DNA of 20,041 nt from Fonticula alba ATCC 38817. Lineage: Eukaryota; Protista; Nucleariida. The stretch lies in the NCBI GenBank assembly GCA_000388065.2, contig KB932212.1. The stretch is one strand, 5' to 3'. Shown piece after piece: positions 326 to 20,000 of this stretch; the stretch's first letter is position 1; every line of letters begins with the position of its first letter. The translations under genes were made by a program, and so were the position numbers. A model generated the notes under the pieces. It saw only the letters and a list, made by a program, of their open reading frames with translations. It was not told the origin of the DNA and made no database searches.

Positions 326-2927
326 TCAGCGCGAGCGCGACCGCCGGCGCCAGTTCGAGCGGCCTCGATCGGGAGACCGGCCGCGGCCGCCATGGCGCGA
401 GGGGCCCGACAGCGAGCCGGCCGCCCCGCCGGCCGACGAGGGGGAGTGCCCCCCAACCGGCGAGTGGCCATGGTAGGGCCGCTTGCTGGAGGGCAGGCGC
501 GGGGCATGCGGCGAGCACGACCGCGAGCGCGACCGAGACCGCGAGAAGGACCCCGAGGCGAAGCGCCGCTTGGCCACATACCCGCCGGCGCCGGATGACG
601 CGTGGCGCGAGCCGCCGAACGACCCGCGGCCGCTGCCGTGCCCCGGCAGATCGCCGGGGCTCCGCGACCGCGACCGGTCCCTGCCCCGAGGGGGGGAGGG
701 CGAGCGCGAGCGCGAGCGCGAGTACCGCCGGCGCCGGCCCGGCATCGGGGGCAGCGGCGGCGGCGGCGGCGAGTACCGGCCCCGGCGCGGGCCGCCCCCC
801 AGCCCCGAGCCAGCCAGCGAGGAGGACGAAGAGGAAACCGACGGGCCGCCCGACGACGAGGAGGACGAAGACCCGGAGGGCGATGCCCGGCGGTGGTGGC
901 CATGGTGGAAGTGGTGGCCCGACAGGGAGGACCCCGGCGCGAGCCGGTCGGATGGCAGCCGCGAGCCGGCCGGCCGGCGGCGAGACCCGCGCGAGGGCGA
1001 CCACGACCGCGACCGCGACCGGGACCAGGACCGCGACCGGGACCGGGACCGGGACCGGGACCGCGACCGCGACCGGGACCGGGATCGCGACCGCGACACA
1101 TCGCGATGCTTGCGGCTGCGGTGGTGCGCCGGCGGCCGGCCGCGAGGGCCGCCAGGTGACCTGGACCGCGACCGAGAGCCGGACTCCGACAGCGACCAGG
1201 GCCGCGACGAGGCCCGGGGGGACCGCGGCGAGCGTGACCGCCGGCGCCGGGGCGAGGGGGACCGCGAGCGCGATGGGCCCCGATGACCGGGCCCCGAGCG
1301 CCGGGGCTCCAGCTCCGGCTGCAGCCGCGGCTTCTTGTGCGGCGCGACGTGATGCTCGCTCGGCCCCGGGCCCGGGGGGAAGGGCTGGTGGGGCGACGAG
1401 TCGTCCGGCCCGCGAGACCGCCGGCCCGGCGGGCCTCCGCTCGAGGACAGCGAAGCCCGGCTCGGGGGCGAGGGCGACCGCGACCGGTGCCCGCCGCCAC
1501 CGCCGCCGGCGCCGGCGCGTGGCCGCCCGCCGCGCCGATCTCGCGGCCCGCCCCGGCTCGAGGACGAGGAGGACCCGGAGGAGGGGGACCCGGACCGCGA
1601 GGAGGGCAGCGATCCGGGACGGCTGCCCGGGCCGCGGGACCCGCCGAGCGGGTAGGCCCCGCCCTCCGGCGAGTGGCCCCGCGGTCGCATGGCGGGCGGC
1701 GGCGGCGGCGGCGGCGGCGAGTACGACCGACTCCCGTAGGCGCCGGGCGAGGGGGACCGCGAGGCGGGCGACGCTGACCGGTGGCGCTTGCGCAGCGGCC
1801 CGCCCCGGCCCGGGGGCAGTGGCGGCGGCGGCGGCGACGGCGGCGGCGGCGGCGATGGCGACCGCGGGCCGCCCGACGCCAGGGAGGCTGCCGGCGGTGA
1901 GATCGACATCGGCCGTGACCGGCGCCCAGGGCCGCCACCGCGCTGCATTTGATGCATGTCAATGCGGCTGAGGCGCCCGCCGGCCGAATGGGCCGCCGAC
2001 GAGCCGGCCGACGAGGACGCCGGCTGCGGCGAGGAGGCGCGGCTGACCGGCGCCGAGCCCGGGCTGGCCCCCTCACCGGGGTCGAGCCAGCCCTCGGCCG
2101 TGTCGGCGGCGGCGGCGGCGGCGGCCGCCGCACCGGCCCCCGGGTCCGACTGCAGGAAGCCCCCCTCGGCCAGCAGGGCCCGCCAGTCGTCCAGGAAGCT
2201 GGCCTGCAATTGCAGCGACACCTCGCTGATGTAGGTCTCCTCGGCGTTGAAGAACCGCGCATTCAGCCACAGCAGCAGGATGTCCACGACAAAGTCATGC
2301 GGCGAGGCGTAGGGCAGGGCCTGCTGCTGGGCCGACCGGCCGGGGCCGGCTCCCGGCCCCCGGCCCCGGGGCCGCCCGGTCGTCGCCACCAGATGCCCCT
2401 CAATGCGGCGCAGGTAGGAGGGCCACTTGACCACGGCATGGTACTCCGGCACGTCATACAGGTCGCGGTAGTCCGCGTGCGAGGCCTGCTTCAGGTACCG
2501 CCGGACCAGGGCCAGCGCCCGGTCCGCCAGGGCCGGCCCGCCACCGGGGCCGGCCCCCGGCTCGGCCGGGGCCCAGCGCCCCGGCGCCCCGGCCGGCAGC
2601 ACCAGCGGCACCAGCCGCCGGATGACATAGGCCGAGCTGCACTCCGGCAGCTGGGCCTCGGCCACGGCATCCCGCACGATGGCCGCCTCCTCCTTCGGCG
2701 ACAGGGCCCCGGCCGCCGGGTGGAACCACAGCGCATTGAAGGCGGCCTCCATGCGCACGGCCGTCTTGTAGTTGTCCGTGTGCGCGCTGTTGTAGTACCG
2801 GGCATTCCGGAACATGGCCCGCATGTCGGCCTCGAAGTCCGCCGCGGTGGCGTACTCCTCCCGGGCCAGGGCATGCTGGATGGTATGGAAGGCCACCAGC
2901 TTGCTTTTGAGCTTTTGCGTGACGGCC
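326..2927 (-). CDS. TAF2: TAF2 coding exon 7: rest of bromodomain 3, bromodomain 4 and RS/Pro-rich tail
   Basis: GCAG acceptor at 2928; EYATAADFEADMRAMFRNARYYN; PEYHAVVKWP..DFVVDILLLWLNARFFN; long RS dipeptide runs; TGA at 328-326. Confidence 0.85.
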
Positions 2928-5061
2928 CTGCGAGTGGGTGGGAGGGGGGGGGGGGGGGGTTGGCGCCGTCGTGCGTGAGCGCGCGCGCACACACATTCCA
3001 AAAAAAAAAAGGATTGATCCGGGGGTCAGGCAGGGCTACAGAGAGAGGGAAAGAGAGGCGGAGACGGGCAAAGAGAGAGAGAAGGGGGAAAGGGATGCGT
3101 GCGCGTGCCCGCATGCGACGGGGCAAGGCAAGCACCGGCACGGCACAGGGACGAGGAGCGAAAGGCCGGAACAGCGAGTCACCAGCCCCGGGGGAGCACG
3201 CACTGCTGGTAGGCCACATCCGAGTGCACGAACTTGAAGGCCCCGGAGGTGTCCAGCGGCCGGATGGCATACAGGATGCGCTCGCACTGCTGGAAGCCCC
3301 GGCCGCTCGGGGCCCCGGTCTGGGCCACCTCCTGCTGGGCTCGGGTGAGAGGCAGCCGGGCTGGCACCATCAGCAGCAGGTTCGGATCGGCCCGGGCCAG
3401 CTGCTGCGCCCGGCGCCGGCCGCCCAGCAGCTGGTCGGCCCTGGCGGCCTCGGCAGGGAGGGCATAATCCAAGGCCCCGGCCCCGCCGGCGCGCACATCC
3501 GCCTCGGCCAGCAGCTGGCGCAGGTCCTCCGGCGCGGGGACCATCGCGGCCCCGGAGACCACCGGCCCGCTGGCGGGCAGGCCGGCCGCCGCGGCGGCAC
3601 CCGAGCCATGCGGCAGCCCGGCCAACGGGGCAGCCTCCAGGCCGGGGCCCGGCCCGGACACCGGGCGCCCGGCCCGGCGCTTCCCGGCGTCGGCCCCGCC
3701 GCTGCTCCGGCTCACCATGCGCACCGGCGTCGAGTCCACCGAGATCAGCGCATCCACCGTCTCGGCCGAGTCCGACGTCAGGAGGGCCTCCTCGACGGGG
3801 AGCGACGCGGCGGCCGCCGCCGCCGCCACCGCCCGCCGGGACCCCACCGCATCCGGGGTCACTATGGAAATGTCCTCGCCCGGGGTGCCGGGAGCCCCGG
3901 GCCCCGGGGCCGCGCCGACCGGGCCCCGGGCAGGGCGCCCGGCGCCGCGCCGCCGCCCGGGCGAGGCGGGGCTCCCCGGCCCCGGCGAGTCGGCCAACGC
4001 CAGGAGGCCGCCACTTGCAGGCTCGCCGCCGGGAGGCGCCGCCTCGTCGGCCGGCGGGTCGAGGGCCGCCCGCTTGGAGGGCCGCCCGGCCCGGCGTGCG
4101 GCCGGTGTCGCCGGCGGCCCCGGCGCCGGCGGAGAAGCCGACCCGTCACCGAGTCCCCCCAGCGGCAGCGGCTCCACCACCTGCGGCAGGTACGACGGCG
4201 GCAGGGTGGCCCCCCCGACCGAGGCCAGCATCTTGTAGTGGTCGGCCCGATGGGCTAGGTCCGGCGCGCGCAGGGCCTCCCCCGGCGGCCAGTGGCTCCG
4301 GAGGTAGGCCTCGATCTCCTGGCTGCAGCGGAAGATCTCGCTCCAGGGGGGATTGACATACTGCGCATTGGCCAGGATCTGCCGGACCAGCAGCTCGGTC
4401 TCCAGGAGGGTGGGATTGTTGTTGGGATTGGCGGACTTGAACTGAGGTGATTGTCGCGGAATGATGGTGGTGACGTTGTTGTTGTTGGTGTTGTTGGTGG
4501 TGGTGGTGGTGATGGTGGTGCGTGTTTGTTTGTCCGGGCGGGGGCCGGGGGTCCCGTAAGATCGCCAGGCCGCGAGGGTGAGTGTGAATTCGAGCGCCAG
4601 TGCGAGCCGGGGGCCCGGGAGAGGCGAGAATGGCCCGGTCAGCGGGGAGGGCCACCGCCGGCCGGCAGGCACGCACCTTCTTCTCGATGTCCGAGAAGGA
4701 CATGCCAAACCGCACGATCTTGTAGTACGTCCGCCGGAAGGCGCTCGGATGCACCGGGTCATGGAAGTACCGGTTGGTGTCGATGGCACGGAGGCTGTCC
4801 AACAGGGCCAGCGAGGAGGCCCGGTGCACCGCGTGCCAGTGCTCGGTTGGGGTGACAATCGCCGGCAGGGGGATGCTGTCCATGGGCCGGTCGGCTCGCG
4901 GGGGATCCGACCGGAGGAGCTGCGCCGGGACCGGCGGCTCCGGCAGGCGGACCTGCCTTGTGCGCCCGGACCACGTCGCGCGGAAGAGCGACATCAAGTC
5001 TGCGTGCGCGTGTGGCCGAGCAGGCGGATGGACAGGCATGCCCGGCGAGCAAGCAACGACA

Positions 5062-5144
<83 letters not shown>

Positions 5145-6874
5145 GAATGCACAGGCGGGCCCCCGAGCGGGGCGCAGCCAAGCAGCAACAGGCGCAGGCG
5201 GAAGCAGGCATGAGCAACGGGACACGCGGCAGACAGACAGGGCGGCACGGGCGGCACGGGCGGCGCGAGGGCGAAGGACAGGGGGGCAGAGAGGCAGGCA
5301 AACAACAACGCACATAGCCCATGTCGGTAGATGTCACTGAAGCGCGGGTTGTAGCTGAAGGCATTGGCGAAGATGAGCTCGATGTCCGAGACGAAGGTGG
5401 CCGCGGCCAGGGTCACCAGCGCGTCCGGCGAATCGGCCAACTGCTCGGCCGCCGGCACATCCACCGGGCAGTGCTCGCGCAGGTAGGCCCGGTCGAAGTA
5501 CCGCCCGGCCTGGATGTTGGCCGACACATCCGACAGGCAGATCGGCCGGTGGACCACCGAATTGTAGAAGGCATGGTCCTCCGGGGCCAGCTGCGGCGCC
5601 ACCGGGTCCCGGAAGGCCAGCGAGTGTGCATCCTCGGCCAGGGCCCGCATGAGGGCCCCCATGCGCTCGGCCAGGCTGGCCGCCGTTTCGGCCGACGCAT
5701 CGAAAAGGACCCTCTCGGACCCGATGCTGGCCACGGCCACGGCCGAAGCCACGGCCGTCCGCGAGTCGATGGTCAGGTCCGGCATGGCGGCCGACACCGA
5801 CCCCCGGCGCTCGGTCGGCACCGACACCTTCAGCGAGAGGGGGCGCGCGCCGGCCGGAGATGCCGCCGCCGGACTCGTGGACGTCGGTCGGCCTGCCTCA
5901 TCCGGCTGCGGCTGCGGCTGCGACTTCGGCTGCGGCTGCGACTTCGGCTGCGGCTGCGACTCCGGCTGCGGCTGCGACTGCGGCTGCGGCTGCGACTGCG
6001 GCTGCGGCTGCGACTGCGGCTGGCTGGTCGCCTGGCGCAGGGGGGTCAGCGGCAGCGGCCGCGAGCCGGCCCCCGCCGGGGCGTCACCACCGGCGGGCTG
6101 GTCCGTGGCCGGGGGGGCCGGCGTCGGCTCCGGCCCCGGAGGCGGCCCGTCATCAGCCAGGGCCCCGAGCTGCGGCGAGGAAGCCGCCGACGAGGCGCTC
6201 GACCGCCCGGCCGCCGACGCCGAGTTGAAGGAGATCGAGATGCGCAGCGGCTCGGCGGCCGGCGGGCCCGGCGGCTCGGCGGCCGACTCCCCCGGGCCAG
6301 AGGCCGCCGGATCGGCCTTCTCGGCGGCCGAGGCCGCCGCACGGGCAGCCTGGCGCCGGGCCTCACGCCGGGCCCGGCGCTCCTCCTTGCTTTCGCCCTT
6401 CGACCGCCCGGAGGAGGGGGCCGCACCGGCTCCGGCCCCGGACGAGGCCCCGGTGGGGGACGCAAGGGTGCTGCCAGCGCCCGGGGGCCCGGCCCCGGAA
6501 GTCGGCCCCTTGGCATCCTCCGACTTGAGGACAACGCCGGGCCGGGCCCCGGGCAGGGGGGACCCCCCGCGCCCGGGCGCCCCCTCGGCCACGTCCGCCA
6601 GCCCGGCATGCGACGCCGACCGGCTCAGGGTCAGCGTCGGCAGGGGGGTCGCCCCATCGGCCCCGGCCCCGGGAGCCGTCAGAACCAGCGAGGCCCGACG
6701 CTCCGGGGTCGAGGGCGGCAACTGCAGGCCAGCCTCGCCCAGAGAAGTCGACCCGGAGGAGGGCAGGTCCTCCGCGCTGGCCGACACCCCCGGCGCAAGG
6801 ATCGGCGTGGCTGAGGCACTGCTCCCGGAGAGGGTGATCCGCGGCAGGACCGGACCGGGGCCGGCATCCTGCTG

Positions 6875-6919
<45 letters not shown>

Positions 6920-8703
6920 TGCCGCAGCTTGGGCCTGGGCCTGGGCCTGGGCCTGGGCCTGGAGTAGGATCGCCTGCTCCTTGAGCTCGCGCTCGCGCTG
7001 CAGGTGCTCGGCCGTGGCGGCCAGCGCGGCGGCCGCTCGACTGGCCGCCACCGCCGCATCACTCCCGAACACCAGGAACAATTGCGGCAGGTCCGGCAGG
7101 TCGAAGGCCCGCGGGAAGAGCCGGCGGATCTCGGTGGTGCCATCGGCCGCCGAGGCGGCCACCGCGGCCGCCGCCCCGGCCGCCAGCCGCGCGGTTGTGG
7201 CATTGTTGGGCGAGGCCCGGGCGATGGCCGCCGCGGTGGCGGCCACATCGCCGGCCGCCTGGGCCGCGGCCAGGAACGGCGCAAAGGCCGCCGCATCGGT
7301 CTCGCCCCAGCCCAGCCACTGGTCCACGTCGCCGGGCCCGGCGCCCTCCAGCCACAGGGCCTCGGCCGTGGGCCCGGCCCCCGGGCGCCCGGCGCAGTCC
7401 GTCGCATCCAGCCCATGGACGAAGGTGGCCGAGGGCAGCACCAGCCGCGGGTGGCAATGCACCCCGACGGCCACCCGCCGGCCGAAAAGCAGCAGCCCCT
7501 GCATGAAGAGGGCCAAATTCAGGCTCACATCGGTCGGCGAATGGGCAGCCAGGATCAGCTGCACCAGGCACACGCGCAGCCGCGTGGCCACATCGGCCCG
7601 CGTGGCCGCCCCGGCCGCGCGACGAGACGACCGATGCGCCAGCGACTCGATGGTGGCCGGGCCCGGCACCGGGGTGGCCACCTCGAACACATAGTCCGAC
7701 AGGGGGTCCACCGCCGGCGGGGCGGTCGGCTGCAATGGCGGGCACAGGGCCGCCGGCGTGGGACTGGCCCCGGCAGCCAGGGCCACCGCCGCCGATGACG
7801 CCCGCCGGAAGGCCGTCGTGGCGGCCGGCGAATTCAACTGCCGCGTGGTGCCCGGCAGCAGCCCGGTCAGCGCGGCGCTCGTCAGCAGGTTCACCTCAAA
7901 CCCGGTGCCATCCTCCAGCCCCAGGGTCCGGACCAGGTGGTACGTGGCGCCCAGGTGCCCCGGCGACCAGGCCATGCCGGCCAGCAGCCGGGCCACCCCG
8001 GACCGCACCCGCGCCGACCGGTCCCCGATGGCCAGCTCCACCAGCCCGGTGATGACCGCCGGCCGGTAGCCAAACAGATCGACCAGGGCCCGGGCCGCGG
8101 CCAGCCGACCGGCAGCCGGGCCACCGGCCCCGGTGGCCAGCCGCAGCAGGGCCGCCGCCCGCCCCGGCACCAAGCCCGCGCGCTGCAAATCCCCCAGGGC
8201 CAGGACGCACGCCGAGGCAATCAGCCCCGGCAGGTCCAGGTCCGAGTGCCCGGCATCGGCCGACCCCCCGGCCAGCGGGACCACCCGCGCCCCGGCCCCG
8301 GACAGGTGGTACTCCTGCAGGGTGGTCATCTCGCACACGACCTCCAGCAACAGGCCCCGGAGCTCGGCCACCAGGGGGGCCGGCGCGCGCCGGCGCTGCC
8401 ACTCCGCGCGCTGGTCCTCATCCAGCAGCCGGTTGGCCCGGTCGGTGGCCATCTGCGCGGCCTCCTCCGCCCCGGGCAGCAGGCTCAGCCGCTCCGGGCA
8501 GTAGACATCGGAGAAGGACCGCGCCAGGGCACTGACCAGGGCCGCGGTGTAGCGGGCGCTGCAATACCGATTGGAGGAGTTGTCCTGCAGGCGCAGCAGC
8601 GACAGCAGCAGGCGCACCACGCCCGGGTAGGGCAGCCGGTAGCGCGAGTCGCGCAGGGTGCCGGCCGCAGCGATCACCTCTACCGGAGCGGGGGGGGGGG
8701 GGG

Positions 8704-8740
<37 letters not shown>

Positions 8741-10345
8741 AGGAGGACAGCGAGTCAGTCAGGGGGACAGGAGGGAGCTCCGCGAGCAGACACCAACAGA
8801 GAGGGCAGACAAGGGGGACCGGGAAAAAAGACAAAGACCCGGAGAAGGGCGGGAAGAGCACAGGCCGAGCGTACGCTTGATGCAGAAGTAGCGCGAGTAG
8901 TCGGAAAAGTCATTCGGCGAGGGGATCCACAGTCGAGAAGGCCCGGCTGCTGCCGCGGCCGACCCCGCGCCCGTGCCTTCCAACAGGGAAGGGGCCTTGG
9001 ACGCTGGCATTTCCACCGACGACAGGGCCAGATGGCTGAGCAGCTCCAACTGCGTGCCGGCCGGGCTGGAGAAGAGCCCCAGCCCCGGGGTGGGGGCCGG
9101 CGCCGCGGCGCGATCGCCAGCCAGGCTGCCCGACCCGCCGGGGGCCGCCGCGGGCCGGGCCCCCGAGCCGGCCGGCCCACCGGCCGCCGCGCCAACCCGC
9201 GAGAAGCACAGCTCCTCCAGCAGCCAAAAGAGCACCGCCTCCATCGGGCCCTCCGGGGCATTGAGCTCGCGCATGGACTGCGGCGGGCGCCGCGGCACCG
9301 GCGCATGCCGGGCCAGCATCACGGCCGCCGCCGCCCGAACCCGATGGAAGGCCCGGCCATCGACCAGGACCCGCTGCAGGGCCAGCTCCGTCCGGCGGTC
9401 GGCCACCAGCTGGGCCGCCGCCGAGTCGGAGTCCTTGTCCCGGCCGCCGCCGCCGCCGCCGCCGCCACCGGGCAGCGGGTCGCCGGCCGGCAGGTCGCCC
9501 TCGGCCCCGGGAGCCGGCGAGCCGCCAGGCTCCGGTGTGCCCACACGGCTGGCCTGCACCGACGCGGCCCCGGGCCCGGCCCCCGAGCCGGCCACCCCGC
9601 GCAGGGACAGCTCCCGCGCCCGGGCCAGCACCCCGGCGTCCGGCACCGGCAGCAGGGCCGGCAGGGCCGGCGGCACCAAGTGCCGAATGGCCTGCAGCTG
9701 GGCCACCGCGTCCGAATCCATCAGCAGCTGATTGCGCCACTGGAAGGGCCGCTGCTCCAGCACCTTCAGACACAGCAGCTGCAGGTCCGGATCCACGCGC
9801 ACCCACAGGATGGGGAAGTCCTCCAGCCGGTCCTGGTCCAATTCCGCCCAGTCGGCCACCAGCCCCGCATGTGGGAAGGAGTCGCCCAAGCGCGGGGGCG
9901 ACCGCCGCAGGCGCTTGGACTTCGACCGATACTTCATGATCCGGTCCCGGCTCAGGCCCTCCATCGGCAGGTAGTGGTCGTGGGTCTCCTCCACCTCGAA
10001 CACCCGGATCGGCAACTCGAAGGTGAAGTGATTCAAGGAGCTGACCATGCGCGTGGTGGTCGACTGCGTGACCACGGCCTTCAGCTCGGACGTCCGCTTG
10101 TTGAAGGTGAAGGTGCACCGGATCACCGGCACCCCCGGCCGCAGGACATACTGCCCGATGAAGTGCTTCACCGCATTGGCATCCGTCTGCAGGCTGCGCG
10201 TGGCCCGGCCGATGAAGTCGTCGAAGCCCAGGGCAAAGAGCCCGGGCCCGGCCTCCGACCGGGCCAGGCGCTCGAGCGGCGTCTGCGGCGGGGCCGCCAC
10301 GGGGCCCGCCAGCCCCGCCGCCTTGCCCGGGCCCCCGGCCAAGTC

Positions 10346-10377
<32 letters not shown>

Positions 10378-13094
10378 TGCCGCCGGGTGGCGGCGGACTG
10401 CCGACCCCGGCCGAGCTGGCACCCGGCCCGGCCGTGGACCCGGCCACCGGGGCACCACTGGCAGAGGCAGCACCCCCGACAGGACCGGCGCCCGTGCCGG
10501 CGCCCGTGCCGGCGGCCGCGGGCAACACGGCCCCGGCCCCGGCCCCGGCCCCGGCCCCGGCGGCCGCCTGCGCCTCGAGGCGCGCATGGAAGCGCAGCCG
10601 CAAGCGCGCCACGCCAAATTGCCACGCCGAATAGAAGGTCCCCGCTTCGAGGACCACCTGGCGCAGGTGCTGGCGCAGGGCATTCGGATCGCGCAGCACC
10701 CGCTCCAGCATGTGCACCACCAGGCGCGACTTGAGGGCCACGAACTCCGCTCGCAGGGCCGGATTCAGCACCGGCACACTGTGCTCATAGCTCAAGGCCA
10801 GCTGGTCGGTGTCCAGCTCGCACACCCGGTCCATGTCCGCCTGCAGGCGGACCTTCCAGTCGGTTTGCCCGAAGAGCACCCGCTCCGCCAGCCCGGCCAC
10901 ATGGCCCACCAGCCCGCGCAGGAACCAGGCATCCTGGCTGGACACCGGCACCAAGATCCGACCCAGGTACTGCTCCACCAGGGCATTGACCACGGTCCGA
11001 TACGAGGAGAAGGCCGCCGAGGGGGAGGCCCGGAGACCGGCCCGCGAGGGCAGCCCACCGGCCCCGGGCCCGGCCGAATACGACACCGAGGCCACCGGCC
11101 CCAGGACCGCGTCGCACCCGCGCGTGGCATACCCCACCGCCTCCAGCAGCATGCGGCTCGACAGGCACACCAGCCCGGCCGCCTGCCCGAGGACCCCCCG
11201 CCGAGGGGCATCCCCGGCCGGGATGAACACCAGCCGGATGTCACACTCGGCCGGGAGGAACCCCTGGGCCAGGGCCGCCTCGTCGTCATCGAAGTCCTCC
11301 TCATCCGAGGAGTCCTCCAACTCGTCGGCCGAATCCGACCCCGAGTCATCCACATCATCATGGCGGTCATCCTCCCAGTCGGACTCCTCGTCCAGCCCCT
11401 CGGAGTCCGACGGGCCGGAGTCGCTCCAGCGCCCGGACCGCCGCCGCTGCCGCTGCTGCTGCTGCTGCCGCCGCCGCCGGTGGGCCGCCCGCCCGCGCCG
11501 GCCGCCCTCGTCCCCGGAATCCGAATACCGCTCACTGCGGTCCGAATCCTCGGACTCGAACCCCTCCGAGGCAAAGGGATTCCGCGGGTCATCGTCCTCC
11601 TCCTCCTCCGACCCGAGGGAGGGGGCCAAGCGCTGGCCGGGCCCGCGCGAGGGGCCTCGCCCGGCCGGGCCTCGCCGACCGCCCCGCCGCGGCCCGGGCG
11701 ACACATCGCGCGACCCGGCAGCCAGCCCGGACCCCCGGGACAGCGGCGAGGCCGGGCCCCGTCGGGCCAGCAGCTCGGTCTCCGATCGCCGGTGCCCGCC
11801 GACCAGGAGCCCCGATGCCCCGGCCCGCGACCGCGACCGCGACCGCGACCGCGACCGCGACCGGGCACCGCCACGGCTGCCGGCCCCGGGGCCGGTGGAC
11901 CGCGACCGCGACCGGCCACCCCGGCCGGCCCCGACCCGGCCCGGCCGACCGCGATCCGCCACATCATCATCATCGGTCGGCTCGTCGGTCGGGCCATGAT
12001 CCGAGTCGGTGGCCGAGTCGCCGGAGCTGTGGGCGCCCGGCCGCCGGGAGGGGTGCCCATCACGCCCGGGCATCAGGCCCGCGCCACGCCGGCCGGACCC
12101 GATGGACAGGGACTTCCGCCGGCCGCCGGGGCCACCGGGGCCACCGGGGCCGGATCCAGGCCCGCCGCCGCCGCCGCCGGCACCGCCGCCGCCCGACCCG
12201 GCCGACCCGATGCCCGGGCCGCCAGACCCGCCGGCCCCCTCGACCAGGAGATCCCCGGCGTTGGCCTGGCCGGCCGGCAGGTCCAGGGCCGATGCCCGGG
12301 CCTGGCGCGCCAAACGCGCGGCCGAGGAAAGATGCGCCGCGAAGGATGTCTGCTCGCGGCGGCGCTGCTTCACATCCGCCCCCGGGGCTGCCAGCCCGAA
12401 GAGCCCGAGCCCGGTGGCCTCGGTCAGGTCCGGCCGGAAGCCCGGCGTCGCCGCCCGGCCCAGGTACCCCCGGCAGAAGGCCGACACCCGGGGAGCCACG
12501 GCCAGCGTGGACAACAGTCGCCGGGGGCACACCCCGGCCGGCACGAAGGCCGACAGGCGGAAGCCCATGTCCGGCGCGCGTGACGCCCCGCCGGCCAGGC
12601 TGCCCGGCGGGTCTCGCGACAAAGGCAGCCGCCGCCCATGCCGGAAGCATGGCGAAAAGCCCAGCGGCAGCTCCACCGGCAGCAGGGCCCCTGCCACGAA
12701 GCCCACCGCCGATGCCGGCCGCGGGGTGGGGATCTCCGCCCGGGCAAAGTGCACCAGCTCCGTGTGCGACCCGGCCGGCGCGGGGCTCGCCCCCGGGCCG
12801 GGCCCCTCCTCCGGGGCCCCATCAATGGCCATGGCGGCGGCCGAATCGGCCGGCCCCGGCACATCGCCATCGGCCCCGGCACCGAGCACCGGCAGGACCT
12901 CTTCCTCCAGGGTGCCGGAGGCTACGGCGTCGCCGGCCAGCACGATGTTCGTCGGCCCGGTGGCCAGCGGCCCGGGCGACGCGCGCACCGACAACCGCCA
13001 AGTGCACTTCTGGGCAATGTCATCCACGCAGGGGAACCACTGGCGCGAGGAGCCAAGCTGGGCCAATGCAAGAGGGCCACGGGGGGGGGGCGTT

Positions 13095-13142
<48 letters not shown>

Positions 13143-16100
13143 GGAGGGAGGGGGAGAGAGAGAGAGAGAGAGGGAGGTAGGAAGAGAGGGAGAGAGAGAG
13201 AGGGAGGGAGGGAGAGAGAGAGAGGGAGGTAGGGAGAGAGAGAGAGAGAAAGAGAGAGGTAGGGAGAGAGAGAGAGGTAGAGAGAGGTAGGGAGAGAGAG
13301 AGAGGTAGAGAGAGAGAGAGAGAGAGAGAGGTAGGGAGAGAGGGAGAGAGAGATAAGCGCGCGCGCGCAACATGCCAGCCCCACTGTGGCAGCCGGGGGA
13401 AAAAAGGCCCGCATGCGTGGCCACCGGCCGGCAGACGCACCACGCTACTGGTGTAGATGTGTGTGATGTGGCCCCCTTGCGGGCAGCGCGCGGCCATCAG
13501 ACTGCCGGAGGCGCTGGCTTCCGGCATGCTGCCGCTGGCCAGCACCCGGAAGTCGATCTTGATGTAGAGCGACCGGAAGGCCCGCCGGGGGGTGCCCGGG
13601 CCCGGGGCACTGCCAGAGGGCCCGGCCGCCGGCAGCTCACCACGCAGCAGGAACTCGGCCGCCTGCCGGGGAAAGGGGACCTCCAGGTCGAAATCCTGCC
13701 CGTAAAACTCCGGCGACAAGACCGACAGGGCATTCTGCCCGGTCAGCGACCGGACCACGTCCTCCGGCGTCGGAGCCGAGGCAGGCGCTCGCAGGCTATC
13801 CCCGTACATGGGCGGTGAGAATGACATCGTCGGTAAGGGGAGAGAGGGAGAGAGAGAGAGAGAGAGAGAGCGAAAGGATATTGGCCCCCGGGCCCGGGAA
13901 AGGGCAGGCCCCTCATCCCGGCGCCGCGGGCGCGGCGACGGCAAGGCACAAGCGCAAGCAAGAGGGGCCACGCACAGGAATCCGGTCGGCCAACGGAGCA
14001 TGCGGCACTGGCCGAAGAGAACCTCATCCGGGTGCCCGGCCTCGGTGGCCTTGGCCAGGTCCACGATGTCGTCCGTGTCCCAGTGCCAGTCAGCCGGCGA
14101 GGCCTCCGGGCCGGGGTCCAGCTCGTCCGAGGCCGGGGTGGCCGGCGCCCCGGGCGGCACGTCGACCGCCATGTCCGAGTCGGTGCCCGTGGAGGGCCGA
14201 TCGCCGGGGCCGCCGGCCGTCGGGGCCTCCGTGCTCGCGGCCGGCGAGGCCACGACGTCCGGGCCATCCGACGCCGGCGGCGATGGGGGCGCGCCGGCCG
14301 GCCCGCCGGCCCCGGTCGGAGCCGCCACCGGCCCGCCGGACACCGATGTCGGCAGCTTCGGCGCCACCGGCCGCCGGGGGAGATCACACCAAAGGGTCGG
14401 CCGCGCTCCCGGGCTGGTCACCAGGCAGGTGACCCCGTCGATTTGCAAGCCGGCCCCGCAATGCAAGTTCAGCGATGGCTGCACCGACGAGAAGATGGGC
14501 AGCCCATCGGCCGCCAGGGCGGGAGCTGCCGGCAGCACAGCGGCCGGCCCCGACCCCGGGCCCGCCGCGGGGGACGACACCCCAGGGCCGGCCGGCGTCT
14601 CGGGGCCGGCAGGCGCACCGACGTCCGGGGCTGTGCCCGGGCCGGACCCCGGGGCCGCCGTGGCCGTCGTCGCCGAGGGGGCACTCACCCCCGGGACCGG
14701 GTCGGCCGCCGGGGCCAGGACGCGCAGCTCGATGATCGTCGATCCGGACAGCACCCCGGTGGCCAGATCCACATGCAGACGAAGGAACTGCGACCGGTGC
14801 TCGAGCTCCGCGTGCAGGGGGGCCGCGCCCTCGGGCCCGGGCCCGGCCGTGGCCGCCGGCTCGGCCGACGTCAGCAGCGGCACCACGTCCGACAGGGACG
14901 ATGCCACGGCCCCGGCGGTCGGAAGATCGACCGGCGCCGTAGGCGCTCCGGCGCCGGTCGCCGACATGAGGGTGCTCGGCGAGTGTTCGAGCATCAGGGA
15001 CATTCCCGTGGCCTGCGACAGGGGACGAGTCGGCCGCCCGACGGGAAGGGGACACGGAGGAACGGGTCGAGGAGGGGGGGAACCCAAGGCGGAGGGGGTG
15101 CCCGCGCGCGAGGGGCCCTGCATCGAAGGGGCGATGCCCAGCGACGCAGAAAGCAGGCGAGCGAGCGGGAGTCAGCAGTGGGGAAGAGGGGCCGCACACA
15201 CACACACACACACACACNNNNNNNNNNCTACTGGTGTAGATGTGTGTGATGTGGCCCCCTTGCGGGCAGCGCGCGGCCATCAGACTGCCGGAGGCGCTGG
15301 CTTCCGGCATGCTGCCGCTGGCCAGCACCCGGAAGTCGATCTTGATGTAGAGCGACCGGAAGGCCCGCCGGGGGGTGCCCGGGCCCGGGGCACTGCCAGA
15401 GGGCCCGGCCGCCGGCAGCTCACCACGCAGCAGGAACTCGGCCGCCTGCCGGGGAAAGGGGACCTCCAGGTCGAAATCCTGCCCGTAAAACTCCGGCGAC
15501 AAGACCGACAGGGCATTCTGCCCGGTCAGCGACCGGACCACGTCCTCCGGCGTCGGAGCCGAGGCAGGCGCTCGCAGGCTATCCCCGTACATGGGCGGTG
15601 AGAATGACATCGTCGGTAAGGGGAGAGAGGGAGAGAGAGAGAGAGAGAGAGAGCGAAAGGATATTGGCCCCCGGGCCCGGGAAAGGGCAGGCCCCTCATC
15701 CCGGCGCCGCGGGCGCGGCGACGGCAAGGCACAAGCGCAAGCAAGAGGGGCCACGCACAGGAATCCGGTCGGCCAACGGAGCATGCGGCACTGGCCGAAG
15801 AGAACCTCATCCGGGTGCCCGGCCTCGGTGGCCTTGGCCAGGTCCACGATGTCGTCCGTGTCCCAGTGCCAGTCAGCCGGCGAGGCCTCCGGGCCGGGGT
15901 CCAGCTCGTCCGAGGCCGGGGTGGCCGGCGCCCCGGGCGGCACGTCGACCGCCATGTCCGAGTCGGTGCCCGTGGAGGGCCGATCGCCGGGGCCGCCGGC
16001 CGTCGGGGCCTCCGTGCTCGCGGCCGGCGAGGCCACGACGTCCGGGCCATCCGACGCCGGCGGCGATGGGGGCGCGCCGGCCGGCCCGCCGGCCCCGGTC

Positions 16101-16786
16101 GGAGCCGCCACCGGCCCGCCGGACACCGATGTCGGCAGCTTCGGCGCCACCGGCCGCCGGGGGAGATCACACCAAAGGGTCGGCCGCGCTCCCGGGCTGG
16201 TCACCAGGCAGGTGACCCCGTCGATTTGCAAGCCGGCCCCGCAATGCAAGTTCAGCGATGGCTGCACCGACGAGAAGATGGGCAGCCCATCGGCCGCCAG
16301 GGCGGGAGCTGCCGGCAGCACAGCGGCCGGCCCCGACCCCGGGCCCGCCGCGGGGGACGACACCCCAGGGCCGGCCGGCGTCTCGGGGCCGGCAGGCGCA
16401 CCGACGTCCGGGGCTGTGCCCGGGCCGGACCCCGGGGCCGCCGTGGCCGTCGTCGCCGAGGGGGCACTCACCCCCGGGACCGGGTCGGCCGCCGGGGCCA
16501 GGACGCGCAGCTCGATGATCGTCGATCCGGACAGCACCCCGGTGGCCAGATCCACATGCAGACGAAGGAACTGCGACCGGTGCTCGAGCTCCGCGTGCAG
16601 GGGGGCCGCGCCCTCGGGCCCGGGCCCGGCCGTGGCCGCCGGCTCGGCCGACGTCAGCAGCGGCACCACGTCCGACAGGGACGATGCCACGGCCCCGGCG
16701 GTCGGAAGATCGACCGGCGCCGTAGGCGCTCCGGCGCCGGTCGCCGACATGAGGGTGCTCGGCGAGTGTTCGAGCATCAGGGACAT
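326..16786 (-). CDS. TAF2: Whole spliced gene: TAF2-like protein fused to four bromodomains and an RS-rich C-terminal tail (about 4,360 aa after collapsing the duplicated segment)
   Basis: Single-copy exons 15003-13976, 13795-13441, 13057-8875, 8679-5314, 4999-4677, 4441-3204, 2927-326 sum to 13,095 nt; every junction is GT..AG and phase-matched (2,0,1,1,0,2). TAF2-type motifs recognised by eye: HIYT..SRQWFPCVD..KCTW; NALVEQYLG..DAWFLRGL; WVRVDPDLQ..QWRNQLLMDSDAVAQLQAIRHL; LQRVLVDGRAFHRVRAAAA; NDFSDYSRYF. Confidence 0.88.
998..1097 (-). repeat. Coding hexanucleotide repeat encoding an (RS)n block
   Basis: Plus-strand GACCGC/GACCGG repeats translate on the minus strand as SRSRSRSR...WSRSRSRSWS. 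Confidence 0.9.
3204..4441 (-). CDS. TAF2: TAF2 coding exon 6: second half of bromodomain 2, linker, start of bromodomain 3
   Basis: TCAG acceptor at 4442; QILANAQYVNPPWSEIFRCSQEIE; CERILYAIRPLDTSGAFKFVHSDVAYQ; GTGCGT donor at 3203. Confidence 0.82.
4677..4999 (-). CDS. TAF2: TAF2 coding exon 5: end of bromodomain 1 and first half of bromodomain 2
   Basis: GCAG acceptor at 5000; YLMSLFRATW...RYFHDPV..TYYKIVRFGMSFSDIEKK; GTGCGT donor at 4676. Confidence 0.82.
5062..5143. repeat. Intronic poly-G homopolymer (poly-C in the pre-mRNA), about 82 nt
   Basis: Uninterrupted G run inside intron 5000-5313; length may be unreliable. Confidence 0.85.
5314..8679 (-). CDS. TAF2: TAF2 coding exon 4: C-terminal helical region, low-complexity linker, most of bromodomain 1
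   Basis: Within ORF 4994..8677; junction reads YFCIK-Q-VIAAAGTLRDSRYRLP; bromodomain motif SLAFRDPV..FYNSVVHRPICLSDV..FVSDIELIFANAFSYN; GTGCGT donor at 5313. Confidence 0.87.
5904..6020 (-). repeat. Coding 18-bp tandem repeat encoding QP(Q/E/K)SQP units
   Basis: GGCTGCGGCTGCGACT(T/C/G)C about six times on the plus strand. Confidence 0.88.
6873..6960 (-). repeat. Coding (AQ)n plus poly-Ala tract
   Basis: (GCCTGG)n and (GGC)n on plus; QAQAQAQAQAQAAAAAAAAAAAAAAAAAA on minus. Confidence 0.88.
8875..13057 (-). CDS. TAF2: TAF2 coding exon 3: M1-aminopeptidase-like core and start of the HEAT-like region
   Basis: Within ORF 8759..13414; CCAG acceptor at 13058 with GCTAAC branch-like site at 13092-13097; GTACGC donor at 8874; contains WFPCVD, NALVEQYLG and WVRVDPD..QLLMDSDAVAQ motifs. 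Confidence 0.9.
13098..13356. repeat. Intronic (GA)n polypurine tract, about 260 bp, with GAGAGAGGTAG subunits
   Basis: Almost purely purine on plus (CT-rich in the transcript), inside intron 13058-13440. Confidence 0.85.
13441..13795 (-). CDS. TAF2: TAF2 coding exon 2
   Basis: ATAG acceptor at 13796, GTGCGT donor at 13440; encodes LYIKIDFRV...HIYTSSV, which joins in phase 0 to LGSSRQWFPCVD. Confidence 0.78.
13976..15003 (-). CDS. TAF2: TAF2 coding exon 1 (downstream duplicate copy)
   Basis: Same translation as 15759-16786, offset 1783 bp. Confidence 0.65.
15218..15227. other. Assembly gap (10 N)
   Basis: Run of N. Confidence 0.99.
15228..15578 (-). CDS. TAF2: TAF2 coding exon 2, truncated upstream copy ending at the 10-N gap
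   Basis: Same sequence as 13445-13795 (LRAP...LYIKIDFRV...HITHIYTS); runs into Ns at 15227. Confidence 0.65.
15759..16786 (-). CDS. TAF2: TAF2 coding exon 1 (upstream copy)
   Basis: ATG at 16786 (MSLMLEH...), then HQFLRL-like segment EHRSQFLRLHVDLATGVLSGSTIIEL and LNLHCGAGLQIDGVT typical of the M1/TAF2 N-terminal beta domain; GTGCGT donor at 15758 (an alternative phase-2 donor near 15790 is possible). Confidence 0.7.
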
Positions 16787-16795
16787 TCCCGTGGC

Positions 16796-17008
16796 CTGCG
16801 ACAGGGGACGAGTCGGCCGCCCGACGGGAAGGGGACACGGAGGAACGGGTCGAGGAGGGGGGGAACCCAAGGCGGAGGGGGTGCCCGCGCGCGAGGGGCC
16901 CTGCATCGAAGGGGCGATGCCCAGCGACGCAGAAAGCAGGCGAGCGAGCGGGAGTCAGCAGTGGGGAAGAGGGGCCGCACACACACACACACACACACAC
17001 GTACGCAC
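16796..17008 (-). other. Probable 5'-UTR intron of the TAF2 gene
   Basis: GTGCGT donor at 17008-17003 (the local consensus), GCAG acceptor 9 nt before the ATG, 213 nt long like neighbouring introns; the adjacent upstream pyrimidine-rich sequence has no ATG that I could see. Confidence 0.45.
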
Positions 17009-17797
17009 ACAAGAGAAAAGCACAGAACAGGGAAACGACCAGCTCAGAGGAGATGGAGGAAGGTAAATCCGGAGACCAGGGAAGGGGGGGTGACAGGCGC
17101 CTGCCGGCTGGGAATGGCGGCGGCGGCGGCGGCAAAAGCAGCAACAGCAGCAGCAACAACAACGGCGGCGTCACCAGCGGATGGAGGGATAAGCAGAAGC
17201 CGACGCAGAGGTGAAGGAAGGAAAGGAAGAGGAGGAAAGGGAGGGGGGGGGGGGAGAGAGAGATTGGTTGTGTGAGGTGCGCAATCCCCACCTGGCGGCC
17301 AGCTAGTCGGAGCCCGATGAAGTACCGGTACCCGCCAACGGACGTGCACCGGTGCCCACTCTCGCGCACACCCCCTGCGCGGGAACCAGGTGCCGCCGAA
17401 GGGCCACATCCTAAATGACGGCACGTGCTCCATAACAAGGCGTGCCCACGCAAGGTGCCGATGGTGGGCATTCTCAACGGCCCCGGGGGGGGGGGGCGTG
17501 CAGCCGCATCTAACGCCCGCCCGCCGTCCGCGCGTCCGGCCGAGAGGCGGACACCATCACAAGGAAAAGCGGGCAATGATATTCGCCTTTTTTATTCTCC
17601 CCCGAGAATCGCGGCGGCGAGCAGCGGGGGGGGGGGGGGGGGGCTTCCCACGAGAAGCAGCACATACACAGGTGCACAGAGTGCGCGCGGGCGCATGGCC
17701 CTGGACAGTGAGAGATCAGAAGGAGGGGGGGGGCTGAAGGCATCCCATCATACAGGGGGCAGCAGCAGCAGCGACAGCAGCAGGGGGATGGAGGGGA

Positions 17798-18199
17798 CTA
17801 CTGCTGCGCCTGGGCGGAAGCCTGCCCGCTCGGGCGCTGGAGCCACACCCGATCCGGGAAGCCATACGGCGGGAGGTCCGTGTGCATGGAGGACCCGGAC
17901 ATGGACGACCCACTGCCGAGGAGGGAATCCTCGCGCGCGCGGCTGAGCAAAATCTTGTGCTTGGTCGGCACATAGTACACGGAGGAGGGGAGCTGGGAGC
18001 TGCCGCCGCGCCGGCGGCCGCCGGGCCCCTGCTCCTCGTCCTCCGAGAGGAAGGGATCGTCGCTGTCGGACCCGGTGTCCATGGGCGCGTCGGTGTCCTT
18101 CGGCCCTGCGGCCGGGGCGATCTGCAGCGACACGAAGCTATCCTCGACCGCGCGCATTTCAATGAGGTAGACACCGGCCACGATGTACTCGGTGTCGCC
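17798..18199 (-). CDS. PAF1: Paf1 probable last exon
   Basis: Phase-0 GCAG acceptor at 18200; GDTEYIVAGVY...VYYVPTKHKILLSRAR resembles the Paf1 Y...Y and YY.P....L.kR motifs; TAG at 17800-17798. The exact 3' end is uncertain. Confidence 0.72.
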   Translation of the reverse strand, partial: GDTEYIVAGVYLIEMRAVEDSFVSLQIAPAAGPKDTDAPMDTGSDSDDPFLSEDEEQGPGGRRRGGSSQLPSSVYYVPTKHKILLSRAREDSLLGSGSSMSGSSMHTDLPPYGFPDRVWLQRPSGQASAQAQQ

Positions 18200-18248
18200 C
18201 TGCGCACATGCGCGGCACGCCCGGGACCGGGAGGCAGTGCAGGGGGGG

Positions 18249-18818
18249 NNNNNNNNNNNNNNNNNNNNNNNNNNNNNNNNNNNNNNNNNNNNNNNNNNNN
18301 NNNNNNNNNNNNNNNNNNNNNNNNNNNNNNNNNNNNNNNNNNNNNNNNNNNNNNNNNNNNNNNNNNNNNNNNNNNNNNNNNNNNNNNNNNNNNNNNNNNN
18401 NNNNNNNNNNNNNNNNNNNNNNNNNNNNNNNNNNNNNNNNNNNNNNNNNNNNNNNNNNNNNNNNNNNNNNNNNNNNNNNNNNNNNNNNNNNNNNNNNNNN
18501 NNNNNNNNNNNNNNNNNNNNNNNNNNNNNNNNNNNNNNNNNNNNNNNNNNNNNNNNNNNNNNNNNNNNNNNNNNNNNNNNNNNNNNNNNNNNNNNNNNNN
18601 NNNNNNNNNNNNNNNNNNNNNNNNNNNNNNNNNNNNNNNNNNNNNNNNNNNNNNNNNNNNNNNNNNNNNNNNNNNNNNNNNNNNNNNNNNNNNNNNNNNN
18701 NNNNNNNNNNNNNNNNNNNNNNNNNNNNNNNNNNNNNNNNNNNNNNNNNNNNNNNNNNNNNNNNNNNNNNNNNNNNNNNNNNNNNNNNNNNNNNNNNNNN
18801 NNNNNNNNNNNNNNNNNN
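18249..18818. other. Assembly gap (about 570 N) inside a PAF1 intron, flanked by G runs on both sides
   Basis: Run of N within intron 18200-18906. Confidence 0.98.
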
Positions 18819-19363: not shown

Positions 19364-19412
19364 CTATCGGCGCGCACGCGCGCGAGCGCCAGGGGCCCCA
19401 AGGGGGGCCAGG

Positions 19413-19413
<1 letters not shown>

Positions 19414-19499
<86 letters not shown>
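19414..19499. repeat. Intronic poly-G homopolymer (poly-C in the pre-mRNA), about 86 nt
   Basis: Uninterrupted G run inside PAF1 intron 19364-19577. Confidence 0.85.
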
Positions 19500-19501
<2 letters not shown>

Positions 19502-19577
19502 AGATGTCAGCGTGTCGGCGTCCGGGCCCGAGCAGGGGGGCGCGCAAAGGGCAATACGCCGGCCATGTTCAACGCAC

Positions 19578-20000
19578 CGCGCCGCCTTGGCATCCATGCT
19601 GGCCTTGGTCAGCTCCGAGGCCAGCAGGAACTTCGGCCGATTGGTGTAATCCTCGCCCACCAGGGAAATGGTCGGGATGGCGGCCAGACCGCGGCGATTC
19701 TGCGCGCCGGCCTCCTCCGACGGGGGCATGTCCCCCAGGAGGAGCGCATCGTCCGGATGCAGGTGCTGGCCCCCGGCGGCCCGGGGAACATCCCACTGGG
19801 CCGCGTCCAGGAGGCTGGCCGCCGGCAGCAGGGCTGCCAAGCTGGCCATCGACGTCATGCGCACCGGGGCATGGGCCTCGAGCGACGCCAGCCGGTAGGA
19901 CGTGAAGCTGAACGGCGACATCGGCAGATTGATGGACTTCGGCTCGAAGGGCGGGTCCGGCACCGTGGCCGCGTAAGACAGCTTGCCGATGAAGAGCCGC
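19578..20000 (-). CDS. PAF1: RNA polymerase II-associated factor Paf1, internal exon (earlier exon(s) lie beyond the window)
   Basis: RLFIGKLSYAATVPDPPFEPK...YRLASLE...LHPDDALLL matches the Paf1 N-terminal signature as I recall it (F..K.kY.N.LPDPPFDPK...LdPdD..LL); GCAG acceptor at 20001, GTGCGT donor at 19577. Confidence 0.85.

Follow-up and report, generated by a model that had tools for sequence, protein, structure and literature searches.

We analysed a stretch of 20,041 nucleotides (nt) from contig KB932212.1 of the Fonticula alba ATCC 38817 genome (GenBank assembly GCA_000388065.2), the whole of which is called the window below. On its minus strand lies a gene that, judged by its predicted domains, encodes the TFIID subunit TAF2, with four bromodomains (BrDs) and an arginine/serine-rich (RS) tail C-terminal to the TAF2 core. 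A preliminary description of this DNA, made from the letters only, had proposed a single spliced gene that joins a TAF2 core, a low-complexity linker, four BrDs and an RS tail in a protein of ~4,360 amino acids (aa), and this proposal is borne out by reading phases that close, by GT..AG intron borders and by matches to Pfam and PDB entries.

Structure of the gene and its TAF2 core

Minus-strand open reading frame (ORF) pieces chain through six introns into a seven-exon TAF2 gene with phases that close exactly, and the complete coding sequence (CDS) occupies 326-15123 (minus strand) with no break. Two ATG codons in exon 1 can serve as the start, one at 15123, which gives 4,404 codons, and one in frame at 15003, equivalent to the start in the preliminary description, which gives 13,092 coding nt or 4,364 codons. 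All six introns have GT..AG borders, the donor is GTGCGT in five of the six, and CT repeats occur in the introns. The exons and introns are:

13976-15123, minus strand: exon 1, an ORF with donor CCT/GTGCGT at 13975 and a GC content at third codon positions (GC3) of 0.87; divergent TAF2 N-terminal domain with low-complexity inserts
13796-13975, minus strand: intron 1, GT..AG
13441-13795, minus strand: exon 2, acceptor GATAG/, donor GTG/GTGCGT, phase closes; TAF2 N-terminal domain continued
13058-13440, minus strand: intron 2, GT..AG
8875-13057, minus strand: exon 3, 1,394 codons; WFPCVD motif, aminopeptidase-like core, TAF2 Ig-like domain and start of the TAF2 TPR domain
8680-8874, minus strand: intron 3, GT..AG
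5314-8679, minus strand: exon 4, 1,122 codons; TAF2 TPR/HEAT C-terminal region, a low-complexity linker of ~750 aa, then BrD1
5000-5313, minus strand: intron 4, GT..AG, with a poly-C run
4677-4999, minus strand: exon 5, N-terminal half of BrD2
4442-4676, minus strand: intron 5, GT..AG, splits BrD2
3204-4441, minus strand: exon 6, C-terminal half of BrD2 and N-terminal half of BrD3
2928-3203, minus strand: intron 6, GT..AG, splits BrD3
329-2927, minus strand: exon 7, C-terminal half of BrD3, BrD4 and the RS tail; stop codon at 326-328

In a Pfam scan run exon by exon, exon 3 matched the TAF2 Ig-like domain (PF25316, TAF2_3rd; 80.7 bits, 1.5e-22, cut-off 27) over positions 2-119 of the 120 in the profile, and exon 4 matched TPR_TAF2_C (PF25577; 35.2 bits, 8.3e-9, cut-off 27) over profile positions 110-164. 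Exon 3 also holds a sub-threshold piece of TPR_TAF2_C (profile 28-61), and the domain spans the exon 3/4 junction. Comparison of exon 3 with PDB entries returned human TAF2 (5.5e-15) and Komagataella (K.) phaffii Taf2 (2.6e-12), the M1-like segment aligning to residues 483-578 of the latter (2.6e-12) and also to fungal TAF2s. The domain assignment of the preliminary description is thus upheld by the TAF2 Ig-like, TPR_TAF2_C and Bromodomain profiles (the last given below); Peptidase_M1 and M1_N went undetected in the exon-by-exon scan. Further upstream, where exon 3 starts, the WFPCVD motif scored 28.6 bits against a TAF2 N-terminal profile built from 70 N-termini; residues 111-137 of exon 1 align to positions 8-34 of this profile, collinear and not significant alone, and exon 2 aligns to positions 119-138, again weak and collinear. 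The aminopeptidase-like core is interrupted in exon 3 by an RS/acidic low-complexity insert of ~350 aa. This insert (11100-12200, residues ~330-690) has an RS run of its own, RSRSRSRSRSRSR, together with a Gly-rich stretch and a strongly acidic Asp/Glu/Ser block. Exon 3 may hide unrecognised in-frame introns, the insert included.

The GC content of the window is ~73% overall (0.66-0.81 per kb outside the second N run), and the published genome-wide value for F. alba is 70.3% (PMC10752896). Because at this GC content long ORFs arise in every frame, ORF length alone is weak evidence. Within the predicted frame, GC3 is the highest of the three codon positions (0.83-0.96) in every 100-codon block, linkers and RS tail included. 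The GC content of the introns is 0.62-0.67 in five of the six and 0.78 in intron 4, which is lifted to 78% GC by its poly-C run, a perfect 82-G homopolymer at 5062-5143 (C on the coding strand) where RNA contigs break. On the plus strand, opposite exons 3-4, lies a 1,548-codon antisense ORF (7937-12583), one of several wrong-frame ORFs of >450 codons. Long wrong-frame ORFs of this kind are a side effect of GC3-rich coding sequence and call for caution with ORF-based calls in the F. alba genome.

Four bromodomains and the RNA evidence

The four bromodomain modules were scored against Pfam Bromodomain (PF00439, cut-off 21.7 bits) and against a TAF2-BrD profile made from 202 bromodomains of the retrieved TAF2 relatives, which matches all four of them:

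5324-5653, minus strand: BrD1, complete within exon 4; Pfam 33.2 bits, 5.1e-8; TAF2-BrD profile 46.2 bits; Asn in NAFSYN
4286-4805, minus strand: BrD2, split by intron 5; Asn in NAQYVN
2723-3292, minus strand: BrD3, split by intron 6; Asn in NARYYN
2165-2539, minus strand: BrD4, in exon 7; Pfam 22.3 bits, just over the cut-off; TAF2-BrD profile 28.8 bits; Asn in NARFFN

The asparagine at the end of helix B that anchors acetyl-lysine is kept in all four BrDs, each of which aligns it to the Asn column of the profile. BrD1 carries an insert of ~30 aa between helices A and B and, among solved structures, matches the p300/CBP bromodomains (4.4e-5). The N-terminal half of BrD2 in exon 5 scored 14.7 bits with Pfam (positions 4-45), under the cut-off, and the two halves of this domain are complementary on the TAF2-BrD profile, exon 5 covering positions 10-53 (24.3 bits) and the start of exon 6 positions 64-102 (17.2 bits). 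The C-terminal half of BrD3 scored 52.4 bits with Pfam, and its top match among solved structures is BD2 of Candida (C.) albicans Bdf1 (1.8e-6). BrD4 has a Gly/Arg/Pro insert of ~25 aa. In a tree of 128 BrD rows without an outgroup, in which half-domain rows share no columns, the BrDs of the window cluster together on long branches (support 0.72) and show no positional correspondence with those of the relatives; this clustering may reflect long-branch or compositional attraction. High whole-sequence scores against fungal TAF2s might suggest a specific kinship of these bromodomains, but this reading is not retained, as single domains score only 15-20 bits and do not exceed the best solved bromodomains.

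Expression and splicing were examined in the RNA data of one public 2012 study (runs X1-X4), in which approximately half of the sequence words of 2900-8899 are present. Assembled contigs of run X1 were placed on 2900-8899, and the check on exon 7 reaches to ~2392. These contigs skip 2927-3203, 4442-4676 and 5000-5313, with CT..AC ends on the plus strand; the joint over intron 6 runs from 2926 to 3203 (cut +1), and the joint over intron 5, from 4441 to 4677, links the two halves of BrD2. Since the contig joints skip three predicted introns, run X1 holds spliced RNA. Exon 4 is tiled by contigs at 5314-5707, 5740-5938, 6314-6611, 6972-7397, 7694-8121 and 8156-8677, a tiling that takes in both the TAF2 C-terminus and BrD1, and the depth of X1 is zero at 5100-5299, within intron 4, and 0.65 at 8700-8899, where intron 3 (8680-8874) takes up most of the length. 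One exon and one frame hold both the TAF2 TPR region and BrD1, and BrD1 to BrD4 are linked by RNA-confirmed splices.

The four junctions named in the preliminary description all have GT..AG borders, and RNA removes the introns at three of them (5314/4999, 4677/4441 and 3204/2927), whereas the fourth (8875/8679, exon 3/4) is only probable. In its support, a 640-nt contig matches 8156-8677 and continues for 118 nt beyond the examined stretch, as a splice to exon 3 would give, and the split of the TAF2 TPR domain across exons 3 and 4 itself supports the junction. None of the alternative exon 3/4 splice pairs that we considered was better than the GT at 8874 with the AG/ at 8680. Other X1 joints, leading from 3833 and 3490 with skips of 57 to 3,527 nt, were rejected as splicing and are taken as repeat artefacts, because their ends are non-canonical and their sides measure ≤23 nt in GC-rich repeats. 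The depth of X1 spikes to ~740x at 5900-6099 and ~105x at 3700-3899, and many short-sided joints start at 3833; coding repeats of the (CAGCCG)n type are common to many other F. alba transcripts.

The RS-rich tail, alternative readings and flanking sequence

The C-terminal end of the protein was delimited by composition and runs:

329-1936, minus strand: RS-rich C-terminal tail, 536 aa, with the stop codon at 326-328

The tail is composed of S (25.7%), R (19.8%), P (17.5%), G (15.3%) and H (4.5%), and its GC3 in frame is 0.87-0.94. RS/SR dipeptides number 95, and in one run S and R alternate over 23 residues; the DNA of this run is an imperfect hexamer repeat (87% matches) with synonymous variation. 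Across the whole protein, the five residues A, G, S, P and R together account for 58.6%, and the size of ~4,364 aa is due to long Ala/Gly/Ser/Pro/Arg low-complexity segments that lie between and within the domains; such segments are typical of a window of ~73% GC. Since an RRM is absent from every exon in the Pfam scans, the protein is not a canonical SR protein and is at most 'SR-related' by composition. Judged from its residues, the tail would be a disordered, basic region that is probably phosphorylated. The C-terminal intrinsically disordered region (IDR) of human TAF2, which contains one His/Lys and one Ser stretch, directs the protein to nuclear speckles and binds SRRM2, a protein with SR repeats (bioRxiv 10.1101/2024.02.05.578926). 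The F. alba tail would most likely act in nuclear targeting or condensate partitioning; a specific splicing or speckle function is conceivable, if rather doubtful.

The 5' end of the gene lies beside an assembly gap:

15218-15227, no strand: assembly gap of 10 N, exactly between two identical copies
15228-17000, minus strand: redundant copy of 13445-15217, 100% identical over 1,773 nt at an offset of 1,783, with the inner ends of the copies at the gap edges

The preliminary description had placed the 5' end at 16786, which falls in the redundant upper copy, and this placement has to be given up, as the CDS starts in the lower copy (ATG 15123 or 15003). The duplicated block comprises the 5' untranslated region, exon 1, intron 1 and exon 2 minus its last 4 nt; in the upper copy these 4 nt and the donor are missing (in Ns), whereas the lower copy reads on unbroken into the exon 2 donor. 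A real tandem duplication of the 5' end of the gene, with two promoters or first exons, would be in keeping with the existence of tandem duplications and with a gap length that is merely estimated, but we consider it very improbable, given that the two copies do not differ at any of their 1,773 nt, that both end exactly at the gap edge, which is the signature of overlapping contigs scaffolded end to end, and that one boundary, the upper one, lies within a (GT)n microsatellite, which hampers merging. Because of this identity and of ends that coincide exactly with the gap edges, the block is almost certainly an unmerged contig overlap, placed end to end. The duplication does not inflate the length of the TAF2 protein, and the N gap leaves the gene intact. 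A model that crosses the gap would have a duplicated or truncated TAF2 5' end, and annotation of the locus should count the duplicated block at the gap only once and adopt the 326-15123 model.

We consider it very probable that the locus holds one expressed gene for the TFIID subunit TAF2 in an 'early-fungal' architecture, with four BrDs and an RS tail. Several observations weigh against this. The RNA support consists of assembled contigs from one study at ~5x depth, with holes at low-complexity stretches (6612-6971 and 7398-7693); it begins downstream of exons 1-3 and stops short of the RS tail, and no single X1 contig spans TAF2 to the bromodomains. The match of the contig covering the exon 3/4 junction ends at 8677, 2 nt short of the predicted acceptor, and three species-labelled RNA runs (X12, X13 and X17) had zero reads placed and thus provide no test. 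Antisense and off-frame ORFs of >1,500 codons are also present in the window. Of the bromodomains, the N-terminal half of BrD3 is weak by profile (0.9 bits with the TAF2-BrD profile), as is BrD4, and the single-sequence AF2 model of BrD4 is of low confidence (mean pLDDT 62), with at least 4 helices in the right order; Foldseek of this model against the PDB found nothing at E ≤ 0.001, many of the top rows being bromodomains. The RS tail is without a homologue in 164 relatives, in none of which RS/SR dipeptides exceed 8 per 100 aa, and it could be a neutral repeat expansion. The cheapness of ORFs at ~75% GC and the fragmentary RNA contigs over the linker, with their two holes, would also suit a pair of neighbouring same-strand genes, in which a normal TAF2 ending within the exon 4 linker is followed downstream by a multi-bromodomain RS protein, as would a word-based search that found no relative of 767-2,440 aa. 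Yet the linker has no stop in 1,121 codons and keeps a GC3 of 0.87-0.95 in frame throughout, RNA depth of ~5x flanks both holes, which coincide with skipped repeats, and the TAF2 core and BrDs occur in one protein in 62 relatives, annotated fungal proteins and the uninterrupted ORF of the nearest relative among them, so that two separate genes appear extremely improbable to us.

More serious is the possibility that there is one gene, but that its RS tail and other inserts arose by neutral expansion of low-complexity sequence in a genome that is GC-rich and prone to repeats, with no specific link to splicing, the 'RS domain' being a compositional accident; to this we give an even chance. A hexamer tandem repeat underlies the core RS run, repeats of similar kinds (RS, poly-Ala, poly-Gly and PQ/SQ) are found inside exons 3 and 4, five residues account for more than half of the protein as given above, the protein has no RRM, and the nearest relative ends 56 aa past its last BrD without an RS tail, which is found in 0 of the 164 relatives. 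On the other hand, the repeat is imperfect with synonymous codon variation, the RS clusters are spread over ~500 aa and do not form one fresh microsatellite, the frame stays open for 536 codons with GC3 the highest codon position, and the C-terminal IDR of human TAF2 has a demonstrated link to speckles and SRRM2.

Upstream of TAF2 and on the same (minus) strand, a neighbouring gene was found at 17798-18248 and 19367-19963, interrupted by a 570-N gap (18249-18818), and its C-terminal exon ends at a TAG near 17797. A 199-aa ORF at 19367-19963 (minus strand) has a weak match to the N-terminus of Paf1 (20.7 bits vs. a cut-off of 24.7), and the locus may thus hold two Pol II transcription factors head to tail. 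The 3' flank of TAF2 (1-130) contains a compound microsatellite, (TGTGCAAG)n followed by (TGTGCA)n on the minus strand, and no clear poly(A) signal is visible in this flank between the 3' end of TAF2 and the end of the window.

Relatives, proposed function and comparison with known systems

An exhaustive search with the TAF2 core among 1.84 billion representatives identified 294 proteins, the best with 37% identity. The core is most similar to holomycotan sequences (30-39% identity), and all of its named relatives belong to Holomycota: chytrids (Spizellomyces, Gaertneriomyces, Fimicolochytrium, Geranomyces, Rhizophlyctis, Blyttiomyces, Borealophlyctis, Clydaea and Lobulomyces), Zoopagomycota (Coemansia, Mycoemilia, Smittium, Furculomyces, Dipsacomyces, Tieghemiomyces and Neoconidiobolus), Mucoromycota (Rhizopus, Gilbertella and Calcarisporiella) and one aphelid. 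The GC content, the CT repeats of the introns and the GTGCGT donors might point to a green alga, a reading that is rejected in view of these holomycotan relatives. C-terminal BrDs, 1-7 in number, occur in 62 of the 164 retrieved TAF2 relatives, exactly four in 10 of them, and the Pfam counts on five named relatives were 3, 4, 4, 5 and 3. Word-based protein searches with exon 4, with residues 690-1260 of exon 3 and with residues 940-1135 of exon 3 were blank and are uninformative about relatives, the first two being swamped by low-complexity words and the third limited to proteins of 767-2,440 aa.

Fusions of this kind have been described before, with 1-6 BrDs on TAF2 of Basidiomycota, Mucoromycota and Blastocladiomycota and four in Mortierellomycetes (Antonova et al. 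2019, Genes Dev 33:888, PMC6672047); the same authors state that TAF2 BrDs are confined to the fungal branch, report loss of the TAF1 BrD from several lineages, Fonticula among them, and propose that TAF2 BrDs compensate for the loss (PMC6672047). Because that study describes them in fungi, both the TAF2-BrD fusion and the count of four are already known, and the F. alba gene is a further member of the kind. The preliminary description had mentioned bromodomain-bearing TAF2s in some fungi, correctly in view of that study and of the 62 relatives found here; it had also offered the four-domain count together with the RS tail as the part to test, of which the count is ordinary (10 of 164 relatives, chytrids among them, and Mortierellomycetes in the published survey) and the tail does stand without a counterpart. 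Particular to the F. alba gene are its non-fungal host, a length ~2x that of its relatives, and the RS tail.

With the preferred reading of one TAF2 gene, the following course of action may be proposed. The TAF2 core (aminopeptidase-like domains, Ig-like domain and TPR/HEAT repeats) would, as family knowledge suggests, dock in TFIID and contact core-promoter DNA, and the array of four BrDs in the same polypeptide, with its conserved asparagines, would bind acetyl-lysine and tether TFIID to acetylated promoter nucleosomes. In animals, acetyl-reading for TFIID is done by TAF1, and in yeast by Bdf1. The RS/His-containing tail might contribute by targeting the protein to the nucleus or partitioning it into condensates, and could, by analogy with the human TAF2 IDR and SRRM2, link TFIID to SR-type splicing factors. 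TFIID must read acetylated promoter nucleosomes, and lineages place the reader on different subunits; a four-BrD TAF2 in Fonticula, where loss of the TAF1 BrD has been reported, would fit the proposed compensation. The fusion would then more likely have originated at the base of Holomycota, and this kind of TAF2 would extend to the sister lineage of Fungi. The RS/His-rich tail also lends itself to asking whether the tie to splicing-speckle components recently reported for the human TAF2 IDR is an older, recurrent property of TAF2 C-termini. A further-reaching reading, which we regard as unlikely, is that the fusion predates the split between Fungi and the nucleariid-Fonticula lineage (the published placement is the fungal ancestor) and that the TAF2 IDR became a true RS domain coupling TFIID to SR proteins or speckle-like bodies. 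If this were true, the link of the human TAF2 IDR to SRRM2 would have an independent, more explicit counterpart in the RS-domain TAF2, and promoter recognition, acetyl-lysine reading and splicing-factor recruitment would be combined on one polypeptide.

Comparison with early-diverging fungal TAF2s shows the same order of putative aminopeptidase-like core, Ig-like domain, TPR/HEAT repeats and C-terminal BrD array. Four BrDs are present in the proteins of Gaertneriomyces sp. (KAJ3178561.1) and Fimicolochytrium jonesii (XP_052923540.1) and five in that of Geranomyces variabilis (KAJ3174070.1), and the number in F. alba is within the known range of 1-7. The fungal multi-BrD TAF2s are 1,500-2,300 aa long and have no RS-rich region, whereas the F. 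alba protein has ~4,364 aa, and F. alba, unlike the chytrid hosts, is a nucleariid-type amoeba outside Fungi proper. The closest sequence is the TAF2 of an uncultured eukaryote from a bioreactor metagenome (protein P0001, L001 3049-7647, run SRR1955887), with 37% identity in the core. It resembles the F. alba gene in having the core followed by intron-split BrDs; in the uncultured eukaryote each BrD is split at approximately two thirds of the domain. It encodes the TPR region and the N-terminal half of the first BrD in one uninterrupted ORF; it differs in having two BrDs, short linkers and an end 56 aa past the last BrD, with no RS tail, on a contig of 59% GC. This uncultured eukaryote may be an unsampled relative of the F. 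alba lineage.

Human TAF2 (1,199 aa; PDB 7EGx/6MZx series) is homologous in the core (5.5e-15), and both proteins end in a basic, Ser- and His-containing disordered C-terminus, but the human IDR is ~190 aa long with His/Lys and Ser stretches in place of RS repeats, and the two tails share no sequence homology. With the SRSF family and SRRM1/2, the F. alba tail shares long alternating Arg-Ser runs and Pro/Ser-rich spacers, whereas canonical SR proteins combine one or two N-terminal RRMs with a C-terminal RS domain, and the likeness of the F. alba TAF2 to them is one of RS-rich composition only. Human TAF2 is without bromodomains, and it is human TAF1 that carries two. The double bromodomain of TAF1 in metazoa and Bdf1/Bdf2 in budding yeast perform for TFIID the acetyl-lysine reading that is proposed here for F. 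alba TAF2, except that these readers are placed on a different subunit or a separate protein and have two domains, compared to the four on TAF2 in F. alba.

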